Shown here: in pieces, positions 11,082 to 64,000 of the stretch | Numbering within the stretch: position 1 is the stretch's first letter | How the letters are laid out: each line of letters opens with the position of its first letter | DNA from: Dimorphilus gyrociliatus | Lineage: Eukaryota > Animalia > Annelida | Direction of reading: 5' to 3' | NCBI GenBank assembly: GCA_904063045.1 | Contig: CAJFCJ010000036.1 | Location: forward strand, 124,001 to 188,000 | DNA: 64,000 bases | Position numbers and translations under genes: made by a program | Notes under the pieces: model-generated | Databases searched by the model: none | What the model saw: the letters and a program-made list of their open reading frames with translations, nothing else | Told to the model about the DNA's origin: nothing

Positions 11082-12657
11082 ATGAAAAAGTATGGCTCAG
11101 AAATAGGGCCAAAGGCAAAAGATACTGATGGTGAAGAAAATCCGACTGAAACGTATTCACGAGAAGGAGAAAACAAAAAATTTGCGGTAATTGATCAATC
11201 GTTTGATTTCTCCCATAAATGTAACACAGAGAAAGAGAAAAATGATGTAATAGAAATTTTAAAAGAACACAATAATATAAAAACTATAGTATTGTCTCAA
11301 AACGGTAACTTGGAAATGTCATAGCGGATTTGTGCGACCAACTTGTCAAATCATCAAATACCCTTAAAGAAATACACTTAGAGAGTTGTAATCTAACTGA
11401 GAATGAATGTATACATCTTGGGAAAATGTTGGACAAATGTTCAAAACTGGAAGTAATAAATTTACATTGGAATAAAAGAATTAGAAATGGATTAGAAAAT
11501 ATATGCGATGGACTTGTTCAATCATCGCACACTTTAAAGTATATCAATTTTGGTAAATGTAATCTATCGTTGAATGATTGTAAACATATAGTAAATTTGT
11601 TGAATAAGTGCTATAAAATAGAACTTATTGATTTAAGCTGGAATCAAGAAATGAGAACTGGATTATCAGATATTTTTGACCATCTACTGCAATCGTCAGG
11701 GACTTTAAAACATATTAATCTATGTGGATGTAACCTGACTGAGAATCAATGTACTAGTATTGGAAATATTCTGAAAAATTACCAAATAGAAGTAATACAT
11801 TTAAGTTGGAATCAGGAAATGGGAAATGGATTATCAAAGATTTGCGATGGACTTTTCCAGTCGTCAAACACTTTGAAAGATATCTTCTTTGAGAGATGCA
11901 ATCTGACTGAGAGTCAATGTAAAAGTATTGCTAATATGCTTGAAAACTGTTCTAATTTAGAGACGTTAAATCTCAATTCAAATCAGTGTATGAAAAGTGG
12001 ATTATTAAAGATTCTGAATGGACTTTATAAATCTAGAAATTCTTTAAAATACATTAATTTTCAAAGCTGTAATCTAAATGAAAAAGACTGCAAAAATCTT
12101 GCAAAAATGATAAAGAATTGCTCTAATCTAGAAGTTGTATGTTTAAATAACAACAGTGAAGTGGAAAATGGATTATCCAAAGTTTGTGATGCACTTTCAC
12201 AATCATCAAATACATTAAAGCATTTGAAATTCGGAGGATGCAATCTGATTGTAGATATATCGGAAATTTATTGGAAAAGTGTTCAAACTTAGAAGCAATG
12301 GACTTATTCCTTAATATAAAGTTAGGAAGTGGACTATCTAAAATATGCGATGGACTTGTTCAATCGTCAAATACTTTAAAATATTTAAATTTTGGCTTTT
12401 GTAACCTGACTGAAAACAATTGTAAACATATTGGAAAAATGTTGGAAAATTGTTCAAAAATAGAAACTATAGTTCTAAGTAGCAATCGAGAAATGGGAAA
12501 TGGATTATCATATATTTGTGATGGATTGATTTCTTCATTAAACAATTTAAAAGAGATCCAAATACAAGATTGTGACCTTAATGCAAAACAACGTAAAGAT
12601 GTTCACGAGATGCTGAAACATTGTACCAAATTGAATGGAAAGCAAATGTCTCTTTAA
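11082..12657 (+). pseudogene. Intronless ribonuclease-inhibitor-type LRR-only gene with two frameshifts
   Basis: 57-aa (28+29) repeat SSNTLKxIxLxxCNLTExQCxxIGxxLxxCSKxExIxLSxNxEMGNGLSxICDGLVQ spread over three ORFs in different frames; frameshifts at ~11312 (GG where GGG is needed) and ~12245 (apparent 10-nt deletion). Confidence 0.8.
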
Positions 12658-35199: not shown

Positions 35200-36912
35200 T
35201 CAGGAGATTATTAAGTACTCATAGTCAATTGTTAATTTGGTATTATATTTTAGCCAATGACTAATCTTTATATGTTGATCTTGGGTTAAATGACAATTGT
35301 GAATACCAATATACTTTAAAGAGTTTAAAGACTGAACGAGACCATTGCAGACTTGCGATAATCCATTTCCGGTTTCCTCATTATTACTTAGAAGTATGCT
35401 CTCTATTCTAGAACAATTTTTTAGCATATTTCCAATATTTATGCATTGTTTCTCATTTAGATTACAATTTGAAATGTTAATATATTTTAACGTATAGGAT
35501 GAATGATAGAGCTCATCACAAATCTTTGATAATCCTTTTCCCATTTCTCTATTTAAGCACAGTTCAATTTTTTCAATTTTTGAACAGTTTTTCAACAAAT
35601 TTCCGATAGTTATGCATTGATTTTCACTTAGGTTACAATCTCTAAGATGAATATGCCTTAAAGAATTCGATGATGGAACAAGTCCAGAACAGATTTCTGC
35701 TAATCCATTTCCCATTCCTTTATTCTCACTAAGATCAATTTTTTCTATATAAATACATCCGGTCAGCATATGACCAATTTGTCTACATAGAGTTTCAGTT
35801 AGGTTGCACTCCCTAAAGTTGAGAAATATTAGGGTTTTGAAAGAACTAGACAGTCCATTGCAAATATCTGACAATCCATTTCCCATGTTTGTATTACAAC
35901 TCAAGTTTATCATTTCTATTCTTGAACACTTTTTCAACAATTTTCCAATAGCTGCTGATTGACTTTCAGTTAGGTTACATTCTCTTAAAATGATGTCTTT
36001 TAATGTTTTTGACGAGTTGGTGAGTCCTTCAAACAGATTTAAAATTCCATTTCCCATTCCCTTATTTCCACTTAGATTGATTGTTTCTATTTTAGAGCAT
36101 TTTTTCAACATATTTCCAATGCTTATCGATTGATTTTCACTTAGATTACATTCTCTTAAATTGACGTTCTTTAAATTATTTGACGATTCAACAAGTCCAT
36201 CGCTAATCCTCAATAATCCATCTCCCATTTCCTTATTTTGAGCTAAATATATTGTTTCTATTTTAGGGCAATTTTGTAAGATTTCTCCAATGCTTGTAGC
36301 TTGATTTTCAGTTAGACAACACCATACGAAATAAATACGTTGTAGAGTGTTTGCGGATTGGACGAGTCCATTGCAAATTTGGGATAATCCACTTCTCATA
36401 TCTTTATTCAAACTTAAATCAATAGATTCTATATTAGTACAATTTTTTAACAAATTCCCTAAATATATAGACTGATCTTTGGTTAGAGAACACCAACTTA
36501 AATCGATATACTTTAAACTATTAGACGATTGAGCTAATCCGCAGCAAATTTGCGATAATCCATCTCCCATTTCTTCATTTTCACTCAAATTTATTGTTAC
36601 TATTTTATGGCAATTTTTGAGTAAATTTCCTATGTTTTTAGTATGGTTCTCATTCAAATGACAATAATAGAAGTTAATATGCTGTAAAGTACTGGACGAT
36701 TTAAGGAGTGCATCGCAAATCTTAGATAATCCACTCTTTCTGCAAACAGAGCAAACAGTCTCACAATCATCCGAACGTAATTCTTGTTTTCGACATTTTA
36801 GGCAATATTTATGTTGACATGGTAGTATTCTCGTATCCTTGGCAACTGCAGTCGCTAAACAATTTGAACATTTTAGGCCATTTTCATCAAAATAGTACAC
36901 TTTCTTAGACAT
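35200..36912 (-). CDS. Intronless RING finger (C3HC4) plus about nine 57-aa RI-type LRR double repeats; putative E3 ligase/LRR sensor
   Basis: CSNC-x13-CQHKYCLKC-x13-CSVC at residues ~14-57, fused directly to the same LRR repeat as 11082-12657; 570 aa open frame. Confidence 0.9.
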   Translation of the reverse strand: MSKKVYYFDENGLKCSNCLATAVAKDTRILPCQHKYCLKCRKQELRSDDCETVCSVCRKSGLSKICDALLKSSSTLQHINFYYCHLNENHTKNIGNLLKNCHKIVTINLSENEEMGDGLSQICCGLAQSSNSLKYIDLSWCSLTKDQSIYLGNLLKNCTNIESIDLSLNKDMRSGLSQICNGLVQSANTLQRIYFVWCCLTENQATSIGEILQNCPKIETIYLAQNKEMGDGLLRISDGLVESSNNLKNVNLRECNLSENQSISIGNMLKKCSKIETINLSGNKGMGNGILNLFEGLTNSSKTLKDIILRECNLTESQSAAIGKLLKKCSRIEMINLSCNTNMGNGLSDICNGLSSSFKTLIFLNFRECNLTETLCRQIGHMLTGCIYIEKIDLSENKGMGNGLAEICSGLVPSSNSLRHIHLRDCNLSENQCITIGNLLKNCSKIEKIELCLNREMGKGLSKICDELYHSSYTLKYINISNCNLNEKQCINIGNMLKNCSRIESILLSNNEETGNGLSQVCNGLVQSLNSLKYIGIHNCHLTQDQHIKISHWLKYNTKLTIDYEYLIIS

Positions 36913-56346: not shown

Positions 56347-58499
56347 TTAATGACTTATATGACAAACTTTTACTTTATTAAAAAGTACATCTTCCAAGAC
56401 TATCTTATAGTAAAATTTTCTTATTGTCTCCGTAATTCCACTGCACGAAAATCTATATCTTTGATAAGAGTTATCACTCGTAAACGATTCTTTGAGTATA
56501 CAAGGACCATTGGGCTCTGCTTCTTTCAGATTCTCATAAAATAAGTTAACCATTAATTGATTTTTGTCATCTTTATCAAAATATAAAGTAATTTCTGGAT
56601 TGATATCTTCTGAATTGAAAGTTAAATTTCCCAACCTCCAACTTTCAATAACAGTTGATTTCTTTGATAAAACAAAACAGGTGGAATATAACTTATCATA
56701 AAGATATTCAGTGTAGTATTCTTCAGTGCATAGTCCGTTTTCTGTTACTCTCACAACTTTTCCCTCTGAATAGGAATAGAAAATTTGAATATTATTCAAA
56801 TAGAAATTATTATTTACCTAAATCGTTGACACGCAATAAATGATGATAGGATGTTTGAAAATTCCTAATTAAGAATTTATCAGTTGGCCCATGTGATACA
56901 ATTGGAGCAATAATTCTAGTATTTCTATTGTATATTAATCCTTTGCCAAGTTTAACTGTACCATCAAGAGTAGTTATCCAAAAATCATTCCATTGTCCAC
57001 AAGTAACATACTCTTGCAGTTTATCTTTAAAATAGACAGATGGTGATAGTTTTTCCAAATAACTTTCAACAGTATTGGATAGAACCATCTTAAATGATTT
57101 TTTGTTATTACGATAGAAGTTAAAAACAATTCCTCCACAAACATTTGAAGCAGTTTGACTGCCATATACACTGAATGTCATTGCTTGGAAATTGTTTTGA
57201 ATGTAAGGTGGAATTGTATATTGCATATGATCTTTTGTATGAATATCATAGTGTCTATCTTCTATATCTTTTAGAAATAAAAAATGTTGGCTAAAAAAAG
57301 AACAGTATTGAAAATAAACAAATATACAAAACCTTTAACAAACACCTGAACTAGGGACAAACCAATATTTCGAGTTGTAGATATCTCAACTACTTCAAGA
57401 TATACTTTAGTTTCAATAAAATTTTTAGAATACTTGAAACATTTTTGAAATATGTTTAAATTCAATTCAACTATTTCCATTAAACCTGAACTCCATTTAA
57501 CTTTCAATTTTGAAATAAATTGTAATCTAAAATGAACAATCATTGAAAAAATGAGTAATTTATTATGATTAAATAAATTCTGTTTAATTAACCTATTTGC
57601 TAGGCAAAAAATACTGGGAACACCATATACGCTGAATGAAACTTCCATGTGTTTTCCAATACAAGCCTGACCTGTGCATTTCGCAGCCCATTCATTTAAA
57701 CTTTGAAAAGCTCCATTTATAAAATCTAATGCGTATTGGCATTCATAAGAAGAGGAGTATACTGAGTTAGCCGTACAAGTTGCTCCTGTTCTTACATTAG
57801 CTATGTCTGTATAGTAATTACTATTTTCTACTTTTTCTCTTATACCTGAAAGTATGATTATTATAAAAGTGATGAGTTTTAATTGTTTTTGTTATGCTTT
57901 TCACAATACACAAAGTACAAACCATCTTCGTAAGCAAAAATCATAATTGAAGAAAATCCAACATCAGCGGTTACTTTTGTTTGGACAGGTATAAAAGTCA
58001 TACTTTTAACATTTTCTCCAAAAGTATATCTTGCTAAAAAGCATTCTACGTCTTTGTTTGTCGCATCAAGATTAAATTTATATTGATTTTTAGCATTAGA
58101 AGCAGTATTATAAATTACAGTCACTTCTTTAGCTTTATGGCTAATTGCCATAAAAGCATGCGATATGCAATATTCAACAATATCATAGACCTTCTGAAAT
58201 ACTATATTAACTTTATGATTGTTACAACGCCCATTACACTCAGTTAGATATGATTGCATGTTGATCCAATTAGGAGAAAGCATGCTTTTACAGTTGAAAT
58301 TATAATTCCTAATAATTACTTTTGTGGAGTCGGCAGAACAAGTTGAATTCCACGAAATATCAGCAACATTTATTAAAACTTTGCCTTTCAAAAAGGGAAA
58401 ATCAAAAATACAAAAAAAAGTTTCAAAAAGGAAATACTTACTTTCAACTTTTACTTGTAAAATTACAAGAAAACAAATAATATTCCTGTTTGCAATCAT
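56347..58499 (-). CDS. Secreted protein F1, tandem paralog of F2: signal peptide, 2 discoidin-like repeats, FAMeT-like domain (last exon uncertain)
   Basis: Signal MIANRNIICFLVILQ; NVADISWNSTCSADS and DIANVRTGATCTANSVYSSSYECQYAL..EWAAKC; TCGQWNDFWITTLDGTVKLGKG. Confidence 0.65.
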
Positions 58500-58699
58500 C
58501 CCTCTCTGTTTATTGAGTTATGTTTCTTTTACCTTCTATTCAACAAATATACATACTCTACTTATACTTAATAAAAGCAAATTCCAAATCTTTTAAAGTT
58601 TAAAATTTTAATATTTAATAAAAATTCTCTAAAACAACTGATATATAACTAATTAAGAAATTTTAATAGATTATTTATGGAATTTTAGAAATAAGTCTT

Positions 58700-61600
58700 T
58701 CTTTGTCTCTCTCTCTCTCTCTCTCTTCACTACGGCTTTCAATTAATACACAAGCAGATATGAATGGTTTATTTTGCATGTTGACTCAACAGATAAATTA
58801 TTGAATGATTTTTCCACAACATGCATTATAAACATCATCACGGAGAAAGGTTTTATAAATAATACTGGCGTTTTGTGATTGAATATAATAGAATTTACAA
58901 TTACAATCTGATCTCCATAGGACTATATCAGAGTTATAAATAAGCGTTAATACTGCAAAATGGATTGTCAATCGGCCGGTTAGGGTTAAGAAGAAAAATC
59001 TTTGACGTTTCTATGGATTTGACCAAGTTAGATGTCTCTTCCATTTCATTCCGGAATTTTTTCTACTATAGTTGTCTGATTTTGAATTTATCCATTTATT
59101 TCAATAACCAACTGCAAACACTACATTAAAATTCAAACTTGAAACACTCAAAACATTACAAATAAACATAAATACAAAATACAAAATTGAATATTCAAAA
59201 AGTTGTAAAAATTTGAAATATAAATTCAATGTTGTAGATTTTTGAGGATTGATAAGAGCGTCGAGTAAAGTTGAATTTGATAAGAGAGCTTCAACTTTTA
59301 GAAATTTTTTAAAGAAATATTTTTGAATTGCTGAAGATATAAAAACTGTATCAGAATTTTTACTAAAATCAGTCAAAGCTTGTAGGTTATATCTAAATAT
59401 TCCACTTTGAAACAATTTATCAGAAGGATTGTTGTATCTCTTCGTTACGTAATTCAGGTATTTATATATTATATCCGTATACGTATTATTATAATTTTCG
59501 AATTGACAACCGGAAGTTGTTGCCACTTCCGAAGAAGAATGACAACTTTTTAAACTTTTTATAGAATTTAAACAATTTGTAGAATTTACACGTTGGATCC
59601 TCTGCAAAATGATCTCCGTCGTCTATAAGAATCAGCAATTTTTTGCTGTGATTCGTTAAAAATTCCTTCAAATGTATCTTCATTTCCTGGTTCTCATGGT
59701 CACTATTACAGAGGAGATCATTGAGTAGCGTCTATATCAAAGATAGTGATGATGATGGTATTAATGGTTCGTCATGTGACAGTCTTAATAGTAGATAATT
59801 TTGTAAAATTTTCTTATTTACCCATAAATAGAGTAGTCTATTAAGAAGTTGGGTTTTACCAATTTGAGCTGATCCAACAATACAATTATCTAAGGTATAT
59901 TTAAAGTTGGATGTTAAATATTCAACGTCTTTTTGCCGTTTATCGTAAGGTTTCATTTGAAATAAATTCATTTGCATATATAATTTATCAAAAAACTTTT
60001 TACAATCAACATTCCTTACAATATCTTCACAGTTTGCTATGTTTGGTAGATATTTTAAAGAATTTAAATATTTCAAATGTCTTTTTCGTACCAGTTCTAC
60101 CAGTTTTCTACAAGTTCTATTTTTATTTAAATTAGGATCCATATTAAATTCGGGTTTTTCCGTTTTAACTGAAGAAAACATATTGGTGTTTGCCTTGTGA
60201 ATCCAAGGTAAAAATTTCAAGTCGTAGAAATTCTTTGTTGAAACTTTTTCAACAATCTTATTTTCAATCATAAATTTAATCTCTTTTTCAACTTCTAAAG
60301 TTAATGTTTTTAAATGTTTACATTCCATTAGAAAGCTTGCAATAGCGTCTATTTGTAATTGAGAAATCGAACCTGACAAATGAAATATCGTTAGATTTTC
60401 CGAACAGCTTTTCAAGTGTTCAAAAATCATTGATAATAGTTTTTGATCTTCCTCAATTAATTCTTCGTTTTCGTTCTCCATCAAGTGAAAAGTTAGACTA
60501 ATATCTTCGAGAAAGTGGCAATTTGCCAAAAGTTCGCTTAATTTTGACAATTCCTCTATAGTGATAATAGGGCAATTATACAAATTGAGAATTTTCAAAT
60601 TATGCGAAGATGTTTCTAAAGATTGAAAAATTTTTCCCAAACTATTACCAATATTTTTGTTATTACCAATGTCAATTTCCCTTAAATTTGGGCATTTTTC
60701 CAAAACATCAGCCAAACTATTACCATATCTTTCGTCTATATTGCAGGAGTTAAACTTCAATGATTGAATTGTCGAAGAAGACAATATCAGTTTCTGCAAA
60801 AAATCACTGTCATTTTCGTCATAAAGTCTTGTAAAACTGGTGAATAAGTTAGCATTATGACTGAATTTGTTCAAATCTGAACAATTCTCAAAATGAATTG
60901 TATAGAAAGTATTCATAAAATTTAAATCATTCAAGCAAAATTTCTCCATAAGAAATATTTGAAATTTTTTATATTGCGTAACGTTATCAGCTATAAAATA
61001 ATTTCTCATAGAACATTTTGAAATATTCAAATATTGTAGTTTGTATTGATTTGGTTGAATATCTTCGAAGAAGATATGTAAATTGTTACCAACATTTCCG
61101 TTTCCGCTAAGAATTATAGATTGAGGGTTTGTTAAACTTTTAAAAAGTTGCCAAAAACCTTTTACGCAATCGATTGAAAGATTACAACCCGAAAAATCCA
61201 AAGTACTTATTGTATTCGAATATAACGATTGTAAAGATTGAAATATTTCCATCATTCTTTCTTCCTTAATTGAATTATTATTGTTCAAAGTGAAAACGCA
61301 TAAACTTTGGCATTTTTCCAATAATTTTTTCAATCTATTACTACCATCAACTTTTAATTTACAATCGTTAATTCGTAAAATTTTTAAAGTTTTAGCAGAC
61401 GACAAAAGTGATTTGAATAGATATTGGGAAGTTACCTTCATGATTTGATTTCCACTTAGATTGACATTTTCCAAATAACAACATGCTTGAAAAAGTTTAG
61501 TTAAGTTTTGTAAACTGGTAGAATTCAAATAGCAATGGCTGAATGAGATTGCTTTAAGAGTTTTTGAACAATGCATTAGACTATTAACAATTTTTTTAAA

Positions 61601-63161
61601 TTGTCCACAAAATTTTGTGTTATAAGACAAATCAATTTCCGTTAAATTTTCCAACTTCAACAAAAATTTGACTAGGCCTTCATATTGGTAACTTTTGTCG
61701 AAATTACTACTGGAAAAATTGATATACTGCAATGTCTTATTAGATGGTAATTTCGCAATTCTGAAGACATTTAAAAATTCAAAATCAAAACAAACAATTT
61801 GTGATAAATGTAAATATTCCAATTTGCTTAAATGTTTAATTAAATAACCCAAAATAAAACAACTAGATTTATCCAAATAACAATTTTCAACTGAAAGTTC
61901 TTTAATTTCATTTTTTTTATTGAATAAAGACCGCAGTAAATATTTCTCATTGCAGTGCCAATAAATTTAATATTCTTCATTTTAAACGATTTCAAATCTT
62001 TTAACATTGAAAAACAAGATGAAAATATTGAACTTATCTTATCATCCCTTACTAAATTATTAATATGGAAATATTTCAATTCCTTCGCTGATTGGTTCAT
62101 AATATTTTCAAATTCTTTTAAAAATCTTCCAGTTTTGAAATTATCCATTGTAACTCTTTCTATACCTTTTCTTTTACTTAAATAGGTCATTATTCCATAG
62201 GATATTTCCCCATTTTCAAATTGGGTATCCAAATCAATTTCTTTTAATTTTTCATTCCACGACTCTAAGAAATCTGTAAAAAGTTTTTTTCGTTGCTCGA
62301 TAGATGGCGCTAAAAAGAATGGAATATCCGGAAATGAGATAAAATCCCTTTCCATTGCGTATTTGATATTTTTTATCGTGTCTTGAAATTTTCTATTTTC
62401 AAACAGCAAATTATAATCGTCGATTTCGGTTTGTTGATTTTGAGCATCTGAATTAAACATAACGACTGGTTGTTGACCTTTCTTGGGAACAATGGATACC
62501 ATGTTGAGTGCTTTGGTTCGTCTTAACATTTTCAATGGCATAACATGATTATAGCCATCTGGATAATCGTCATTATTCATCCAAGGACGTTTTATGCTAT
62601 TTGTACAAACTAAATTATAATTGGAAATGTAGTCTTTACATTTGTGAAAAAATTCTATATCCGGTTCAACAATTTCGCAATTAATAATACAAAAATTTGA
62701 ATTCTTGTTTGAATCTGATTAGTGCTTTGAATGAATTCAATATCAAATTCATATTCGTCGAATATCAATTTTTTCAATTTTTTCATTTTTTTAACAGACG
62801 ATAAAAATTCATAGAAATTTTTTTCCAAGTCAATTAAAAACTTGTTTTCCATTGTTTTAAACGTTAAAACTGTTAGTTGAGTACAAATTTTAATATTTTC
62901 AAAGAGAGCTGTCTCGTCTGAATCTGTTGGAAATTCACAATCGATTAACACTAATTCCGTTAAAGTTGCCTGAAATTTCTTAAGTATAGCCTCAATAATA
63001 TAATTCGTCAGAATTTCTTTTTCCAGAGTTACACTTGTAAGACTATCGTCACCATTTATTAAATCTATCAATGTTTTTGATAGAGAAAATTTTCTTTTTA
63101 ACTCCTCTACACACATCATTCGCTGGTAGACGTTGTTTGAGTATTTATTCAAAAAGTACAT
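58700..63161 (-). pseudogene. NLR-like gene with N-terminal LRRs and C-terminal NACHT-type NTPase, carrying several reading-frame lesions
   Basis: LRRs LTEIDLSYN, LENVNLSGN, LREIDIGNN and others; then FDKLYMQMNL, Walker A GSAQIGKT (59852-59875) plus LLYLW; Walker B LLILIDDGD; LLSNSTLLDALINP; possible winged-helix YIFNHKT near 58870. Lesions: A8 run at 61911-61918, in-frame TAG at 59732, frame change at ~59500-59600. Linkage of 62655-63161 and the 3' end are uncertain. Confidence 0.75.
58706..58726. repeat. (TC)n microsatellite
   Basis: About 10 TC units. Confidence 0.9.
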
Positions 63162-64000
63162 TAACTGATATACTTCCGTTTTCAGTCTTTTTCATCTTAT
63201 TATGACAATGAAAGACAAAAACAGGTCAATCTTACAACTTTCAAATTTGCCATGGGGGAGAAAATGGCAATTGAACAGAGTTGCTAAGTGTTAATATTAC
63301 AAAAAGTATTTTTTTGATATGTTCAGCTTTCAATCACTTCCGTTGAATTGGAGATAACATTCACAAAAAAGTGAAAAGAGTGTTTTGTTTTAGAAAATAT
63401 CTTACTTTCTTATTTGACAAAAAGAAATAGATACCAGTTGAAATAAGCCAATAAAATAGATCTATACCCTGGACTCTTATATAAACATTTTATCATTTAC
63501 TAATCCATTAACAATATTAAAGTAGAGAGTTCTGTGAATGTTTTTTGTATAAAAATATTGAACATCTGTTCAGAAGAATAATGGCTAATAAACTATTTCT
63601 AAACAAGTTTATTGCTATGTGTATTTTCACATACACATGAAGTGGCCTTATCTTAGATCATATTTCCTGTCCAAAGTTCAAAAGCTACTCAATTGAGAAC
63701 ATTAAATAAATATTGTTTTTATTTTTTTATAGCTAAAATTAGAAAGGAATATCTTTCATTTTATGTTTAAAAAACTGTGTTCAAAGTTGCAAACCGAATA
63801 GTATGGCGTCTAATTTTCAAGTTCCAGTTTCTTTCATTTCGGGATGAATGCTAAAAAAAGATGCTGAAATGTGGAAGTAGTTTTATATTAACTCGAATTT
63901 AAAGTTATATTGATATTGTACAACTTTAAGAGTTCGCAATGCCATAAATACACTCCTATCCACTAAAATAGCATATGCTACTCTGCGGATTGATATTGGA

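Follow-up and report, generated by a model that had tools for sequence, protein, structure and literature searches.

The window is a 64,000-nucleotide stretch of the annelid Dimorphilus gyrociliatus (assembly GCA_904063045.1, contig CAJFCJ010000036.1, positions 124,001 to 188,000) and is AT-rich, at ~28% GC. The locus at 63191-59101 on its minus strand carries leucine-rich repeats (LRRs) followed by a NACHT-type nucleoside triphosphatase (NTPase). With a probability of about 0.8, judged from sequence comparison, this locus is paralogous to a two-module NLR gene of D. gyrociliatus and has decayed, and its LRR-then-NACHT order is the seam between the first LRR array (LRR1) and the second NACHT (NACHT2) of that gene. 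Read through hidden Markov models (HMMs) of the family, which were built from the canonical NLR just upstream, four D. gyrociliatus NLRs, and two proteins from Logan assemblies, the genomic order is post-NACHT helices, LRRs, a pre-NACHT region, and half a NACHT.

The core of the locus is a minus-strand frame of 744 codons that is free of stops from 61966 to 59735. At the stop frequency of all six frames of the window (0.068 per codon), a frame of this length has a chance probability of ~1.6e-23. It contains ribonuclease-inhibitor-type LRRs, a linker of ~130 residues, and the Walker A motif GSAQIGKT (59875-59852), which shares an exon-like frame with the LRRs, as an earlier note made from the letters alone had claimed. 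The N-terminal 605 residues of the frame match ribonuclease inhibitor (E 8.6e-13) and the LRRs of NLRP1 (E 5e-4) in the PDB and score 29.4 bits with Pfam LRR_4. GenBank splits the locus into two protein-coding genes, one of 246 aa (62580-61840) and one of 569 aa (61441-59732).

The second of these gene models ends at an in-frame TAG (59734-59732) between Walker A and Walker B. The frame resumes after the TAG and reaches Walker B (LLILIDD, 59638-59618) in the frame of Walker A, which bears out the second claim of the earlier note; both the family HMM and the tblastn alignment to the intact paralog described below cross the TAG. Pfam NACHT (PF05729, gathering cutoff 26.7 bits) recognizes two collinear but weak pieces that score separately, one at profile positions 4-32 (13.8 bits) and one at 54-97 (12.2 bits). 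The 22 residues between them, TAG included, fill 21 profile positions, so no intron is needed. A short intron hiding the TAG was considered at 59821-59732 (90 nt, GTAAAT..ATATAG) and at 59780-59703 (78 nt) and was rejected because the stretch aligns to the Pfam NACHT spacing, to the family HMM, and to both intact relatives. A ciliate-type code with TAG as a sense codon was likewise rejected: the source is an annelid, and counting open reading frames (ORFs) with TGA as the only stop gave no clear signal.

The translation of window positions 59735-60250 was compared exhaustively, with HMMER, to 1.84 billion representative proteins; besides the window's own protein, only two were returned, P0011 and P0012. 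P0011 is a 2233-aa protein matched at internal residues 1566-1722; its ORF is uninterrupted and identical in three Logan runs (SRR23372216, SRR23372228, and SRR23372229), where it lies on AT-rich contigs of another organism. P0012 is the D. gyrociliatus protein CAD5126913.1 (DgyrCDS14929), annotated with 1842 aa and matched at residues 1706-1828. Its locus, L007:5983-13323 on contig CAJFCJ010000103.1, is a single stop-free frame of 2447 codons, hereafter the paralog. The GenBank model inserts an intron and ends at the second P-loop, and the open genomic frame adds NACHT2 and a second LRR array (LRR2). The search for intact paralogs that the earlier note had proposed thus found two NACHT-LRR units in one ORF of the same genome. 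Directly downstream of this ORF, a run of N of ~3.2 kb (L007:13900-17130) is either a gap or a masked stretch.

Both P0011 and the paralog read NACHT1-LRR1-linker-NACHT2-LRR2. In full, the intact members consist of one intronless ORF encoding an N-terminal domain, NACHT1, a helical region, LRR1, a pre-NACHT linker, NACHT2, a helical region, and a short LRR2. No Pfam profile matches the N-terminal domain of the family significantly; the best value is E 0.026, reached by one member with CARD_2. Two stretches of the paralog ORF match Pfam NACHT, summing to 50.5 bits. Taken singly, NACHT2 reaches 31.5 bits in the paralog and 31.6 bits in P0011. The C-terminal ~130 residues of the paralog match the LRRs of ribonuclease inhibitor and NLRP3 (E 2.5e-11). 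An AlphaFold (AF2) model of the second module of the paralog has a mean predicted local distance difference test score of 64.6, with ~80 over the first 300 residues, and a fold search of the PDB with this model ranks NOD2 first (1.4e-12), followed by NLRC4, NAIP5, and NLRP3.

Roco proteins such as LRRK2, with their LRR-Roc-COR order, are a known system in which LRRs lie N-terminal to a P-loop NTPase. The 50 fold matches listed for the second module of the paralog comprise NLRs and related STAND proteins and include no Roco protein or LRRK. Pfam finds no Roc, Ras, or COR match in P0011 or the paralog at E<=0.01, nor in the window pieces even at E<=10. The lack of Roc/COR matches, a Walker B of the hhhhDD type, and a fold that matches NLRs together mean that the window locus is not a Roco gene. 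The earlier note's assignment of the P-loop to the NACHT type rather than to ROC therefore stands, carried by the Pfam scores and fold of the relatives' second modules.

The second modules are set apart within the family by sequence and by phylogeny. Canonical paralogs carry the winged-helix motif F-x-H-L-S-x-Q-E-F, and the histidine is absent from the second modules, which read F-P-S-K-S-I-E in P0011 (~1940-1955) and F-I-L-S-S-I-E in the paralog (~2110-2125). In known NLRs, the winged-helix histidine contacts ADP. A maximum-likelihood tree of NTPase modules, comprising the second modules (N2) of the window, the paralog, and P0011, two first modules (N1), and the canonical family, places the three N2 modules in one clade with a support of 100/100 and joins window and paralog N2 at 98/94. 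The N2 branch is very long. Both N1 modules fall inside the canonical NLR family, where they group at 97/97. Since the N2 modules form one clade and the N1 modules another, the LRR1-to-NACHT2 seam is older than the split of these genes, and on this phylogeny it is ancestral to the double-NLR family.

The window copy aligns with this architecture over the following parts, all on the minus strand.

62658-63191: segment A, in a frame other than that of the 744 codons, the helical region located behind NACHT1 in intact relatives; family HMM positions 462-551, 29.7 bits, E 1.2e-11 (Z=1); 31% identity to paralog residues 487-617 (window 63179-62793).
61843-62718: segment B, the pre-LRR region and first LRRs of module 1; 34% identity to paralog residues 744-1012 (window 62688-61915).
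61911-61918: A8 homopolymer with the frameshift between segment B and the next stretch, segment C; the high-scoring segment pairs join at paralog residue 1012 / window 61915 with no residue lost.
60152-61966: LRR1 array of ribonuclease-inhibitor type, in the 744-codon frame; family HMM 108.8 + 59.4 bits; 45% identity to paralog residues 1012-1357 (window 61915-60863).
59893-60151: linker, the pre-NACHT region of module 2; aligned from family HMM position 70 (the pre-NACHT segment) to the P-loop.
59852-59875: Walker A of NACHT2, read from the sequence; surrounding residues nearly identical to the paralog.
59732-59734: in-frame TAG inside NACHT2; the family HMM runs across it codon for codon.
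59537-59731: segment D, NACHT2 via Walker B; module-2 HMM positions 2-45, 18.8 bits.
59290-59505: segment E, a piece of the module-2 winged helix, in another frame; module-2 HMM positions 152-220, 28.9 bits, E 2.3e-11; 46% identity to paralog residues 2109-2147.

Across the seam, the alignment to the paralog continues on the same strand as follows.

60862-59606: paralog residues 1518-1950; tblastn, 41.5% identity over 441 residues, E 1e-75, across the TAG.
To 59537: paralog to ~1975; the same frame goes on.
59505-59290: paralog ~2082-2150; covered by the module-2 HMM match of segment E, in another frame.

The tblastn alignment passes through the TAG with a 4-residue gap nearby and finishes just past Walker B. 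Paralog residues 1358-1517, which have no counterpart between the two long alignments, look like an insertion in the paralog, because P0011 (978-1776) aligns through the region in one alignment of 828 columns. The linker also aligns to the sequence between LRR1 and NACHT2 in both the paralog and P0011, and this agrees with the earlier note's suggestion that it resembles a pre-NACHT segment. Linker and P-loop region together, with the TAG read as X, match family HMM positions 70-240 at 17.6 bits, up to Walker B. DNA identity to the paralog reaches 79.7% over 118 nt around Walker A versus 65.8% in the LRRs.

Of the paralog, only residues 487 to ~2150 have a counterpart in the window copy, spread over four stop-free stretches that occupy three reading frames and are interrupted by one stop codon. 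Upstream there is no counterpart of paralog residues 1-486, and no remnant of NACHT1 lies within 2.9 kb upstream of segment A. The homology of segment A begins at the first codon past a stop, which places the 5′ truncation point there. Between segments A and B, near 62700, ~105 paralog codons (roughly 632-740) are absent and the frame changes. Segment B, in which GenBank's 246-aa gene sits, uses a frame different from those of segments A and C, and the frame shifts again at 61915 within the A8 run. Between 59537 and 59505 (~59520), ~106 codons of the NACHT2 core are lost together with a further frame change, and these include the FVR and HPL motifs present in NACHT2 of the relatives. The homology of segment E stops at 59290 and its frame terminates at 59103-59101; nothing downstream of 59290 matches paralog residues 2151-2440, so the window copy has no LRR2. 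Two other readings of the 3′ part were rejected. An intron joining segments D and E, of 64 nt (59589-59526) or of 103/106 nt, does not fit, as D matches module 2 to 59537 and E resumes ~106 profile positions further on; segment E is also not additional NACHT core but a winged-helix fragment.

As a result of these lesions, the core of nucleotide-binding domain, helical domain, and winged helix of the window NACHT2 is not complete in any open frame. The remaining LRRs belong to module 1, whose own NACHT is gone, and no LRRs lie C-terminal to NACHT2. The window copy thus has the join of LRR1, pre-NACHT2, and NACHT2, with its NTPase in the N2 clade, and does not have all four blocks of a double NLR in one frame.

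The earlier note had read the locus as a reversed NLR, with an LRR sensor first and a NACHT last. LRRs and P-loop do share one 744-codon frame, and the P-loop with its flanks is the best-conserved stretch relative to the paralog. However, both intact relatives have an N-terminal domain and a full NACHT1 module before LRR1 and an LRR2 after NACHT2, so the LRR-to-NACHT order is the seam of a two-module NLR, and the window copy looks LRR-first because its 5′ part is missing. Segments A and B, which precede the LRRs, are homologous to the region after NACHT1, and the window NACHT carries a stop, lacks ~106 core codons, and breaks off in the winged helix. A genuine LRR-first family is therefore very improbable. 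What survives of the idea is the junction itself, which is conserved in the 2447-codon and 2233-aa ORFs; the family that carries it is not reversed.

Misassembly, which the earlier note had raised as a concern, was examined with Logan contigs of run X1 from the same organism. These contigs cover 58900-59882 and 59856-63400 with zero differing letters and zero gaps, and they contain the frame changes, the A8 run, and the TAG. Because read-based contigs reproduce the lesions, these are not consensus errors of long reads. The agreement is letter for letter over 58900-63400, but the contigs break at the P-loop, where they join at a 33-nt node (59853-59885) with a depth of 190 versus 92 and 129 on its flanks. 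The raised depth means that another genomic locus must share the exact 33-mer. That locus is not the paralog on contig 103, which has no 25-mer in common with the window locus, and it may be a closer family member.

An assembly chimera, in which the LRRs and the sequence past the P-loop come from two family members joined at the shared 33 nt, would account for both the position of this break and the depth of the node. It is nevertheless scarcely credible: the window belongs to a 204-kb contig, and both sides are collinear with the same paralog at similar identity. Even if the two parts were wrongly joined, each would come from a double NLR with this seam, and the conclusion on architecture would stand.

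The locus could instead be a living, neofunctionalised truncated gene whose product consists of LRRs alone or of LRRs plus a P-loop stub that ends at the TAG, as in GenBank's 569-aa model. The length of the open frame, far beyond chance, the annotated gene model (61441-59732), and the occurrence of LRR-only and RING-LRR genes with the same LRR type in the genome all speak for it. On the other side, a collection of 5.8 billion proteins, searched in the 393-1250 aa range, holds no transcript-derived protein of this sequence, and a word search with the junction region found no close paralogs among proteins of that length. Run X3 (same organism, run type unrecorded) contains none of the stretch. 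The open frame leads into a useless half NACHT, and frame breaks flank it on both sides. A living truncated gene is thus unlikely; the most likely reading of the locus is a young pseudogene from the double-NLR family. Inactivation would be recent, since the lesions are few and the 744-codon frame is still open; the copy would now give at most an LRR-only fragment.

Several points weigh against the reading of the locus as a recently decayed double NLR. The 744-codon frame could be open because selection still acts on an LRR-only product, and not because the gene died recently, and GenBank lists two protein-coding genes within the locus. The paralog is only 31-45% identical, and a closer intact relative might recast some of the "deletions" as lineage differences. 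Run X1 possibly derives from the same sample that was used to build or polish the assembly and hence is not fully independent. Owing to the shared 33-nt node, short reads alone do not prove that the LRR side is contiguous with the side after the P-loop.

Beyond the high end of the window, just upstream and on the same strand, is a canonical NLR with a single module (L001:458-5329, window-equivalent ~70984-66113). It is an uninterrupted ORF of 1624 codons with an N-terminal domain, a NACHT (Pfam 43.3 bits), and a long ribonuclease-inhibitor-type LRR array, and it is absent from the called genes of its locus. The earlier note had proposed the window locus as a possible source of neighboring LRR-only and RING-LRR genes. 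Relative to the LRRs of the locus, identity is 24% for the RING-LRR gene (35287-36729), 24-30% for the LRR gene (11324-12624), and 25-27% for the neighboring canonical NLR. Identity to the neighboring genes is about as low as to the canonical NLR, so nothing marks the locus as their source.

On the same strand, the NLR loci are bordered by cysteine-rich ORFs whose products appear to be secreted, at window positions 56500-58517 (minus) and at L001:6200-7201. Compared with each other as a test for segmental duplication, these flanking genes show no detectable paralogy. P0002 (L002/L003; Logan runs SRR23372229 and SRR23372228), from the same organism as P0011, is a protein of 997 aa whose RING/B-box part is fused to LRRs of the type described here; it parallels the RING-LRR gene at window positions 35200-36912. 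P0004 (DgyrCDS14643, 2396 aa) is an annotated D. gyrociliatus NLR with precomputed Pfam matches to a MULE transposase (PF10551) and FLYWCH (PF04500); its LRR units are ~57 aa long, and each contains a string of the form G-x4-G-K-S that resembles a P-loop. A fused gene model or an inserted transposon could explain this protein.

The double-NLR gene may have arisen when a second NLR unit without an N-terminal domain fused in frame behind a first. By analogy with sensor/helper NLR pairs, the two ATPase modules of intact members might work as such a pair in one chain. The seam probably reveals a hitherto undescribed family of animal double NLRs built as a single chain, with a highly divergent second ATPase module behind a first sensor, which would be an animal counterpart of the paired or fused NLRs of plants. 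The window copy would be either a member that was disabled recently or an LRR fragment still in use, and it could show how such genes are dismantled into LRR-only genes. Literature phrase searches returned no description of an animal NACHT-LRR-NACHT-LRR protein, two-NLR fusions being described for plants only; nor did they return any paper about the NLRs of D. gyrociliatus.

Taken alone, the window locus is a gene copy in ordinary decay, and its value lies in pointing to intact, intronless double-NLR ORFs of 2233 and 2447 codons. If expressed, the intact genes would provide a natural single-chain model of NLR pairing. GenBank cuts the paralog at 1842 aa and splits the window locus, so NLR censuses based on these models would miss the architecture.

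Lineage-specific expansions of annelid NLRs have been reported for Capitella (PMC3879445). The family resembles animal NLRs such as NOD2, NLRC4/NAIP, and NLRP3 in its NACHT with Walker A and Walker B, its ribonuclease-inhibitor-type LRRs, and the modeled fold of module 2, which is predicted to be like that of NOD2 and NLRC4. The intact relatives differ by having two NACHT-LRR units in one chain, the second of which lacks an N-terminal effector domain and the winged-helix histidine of canonical paralogs and sits on a very long branch; the window copy itself is in addition truncated and broken. Plant fused NLRs likewise have two STAND NTPase modules per polypeptide. Wheat WTN1 has tandem NB-ARC domains (bioRxiv 10.1101/2024.08.30.610185), and a maize case has the same NTPase-LRR-NTPase-LRR order. 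The plant proteins use NB-ARC where the annelid family has NACHT, and the two are of independent origin.

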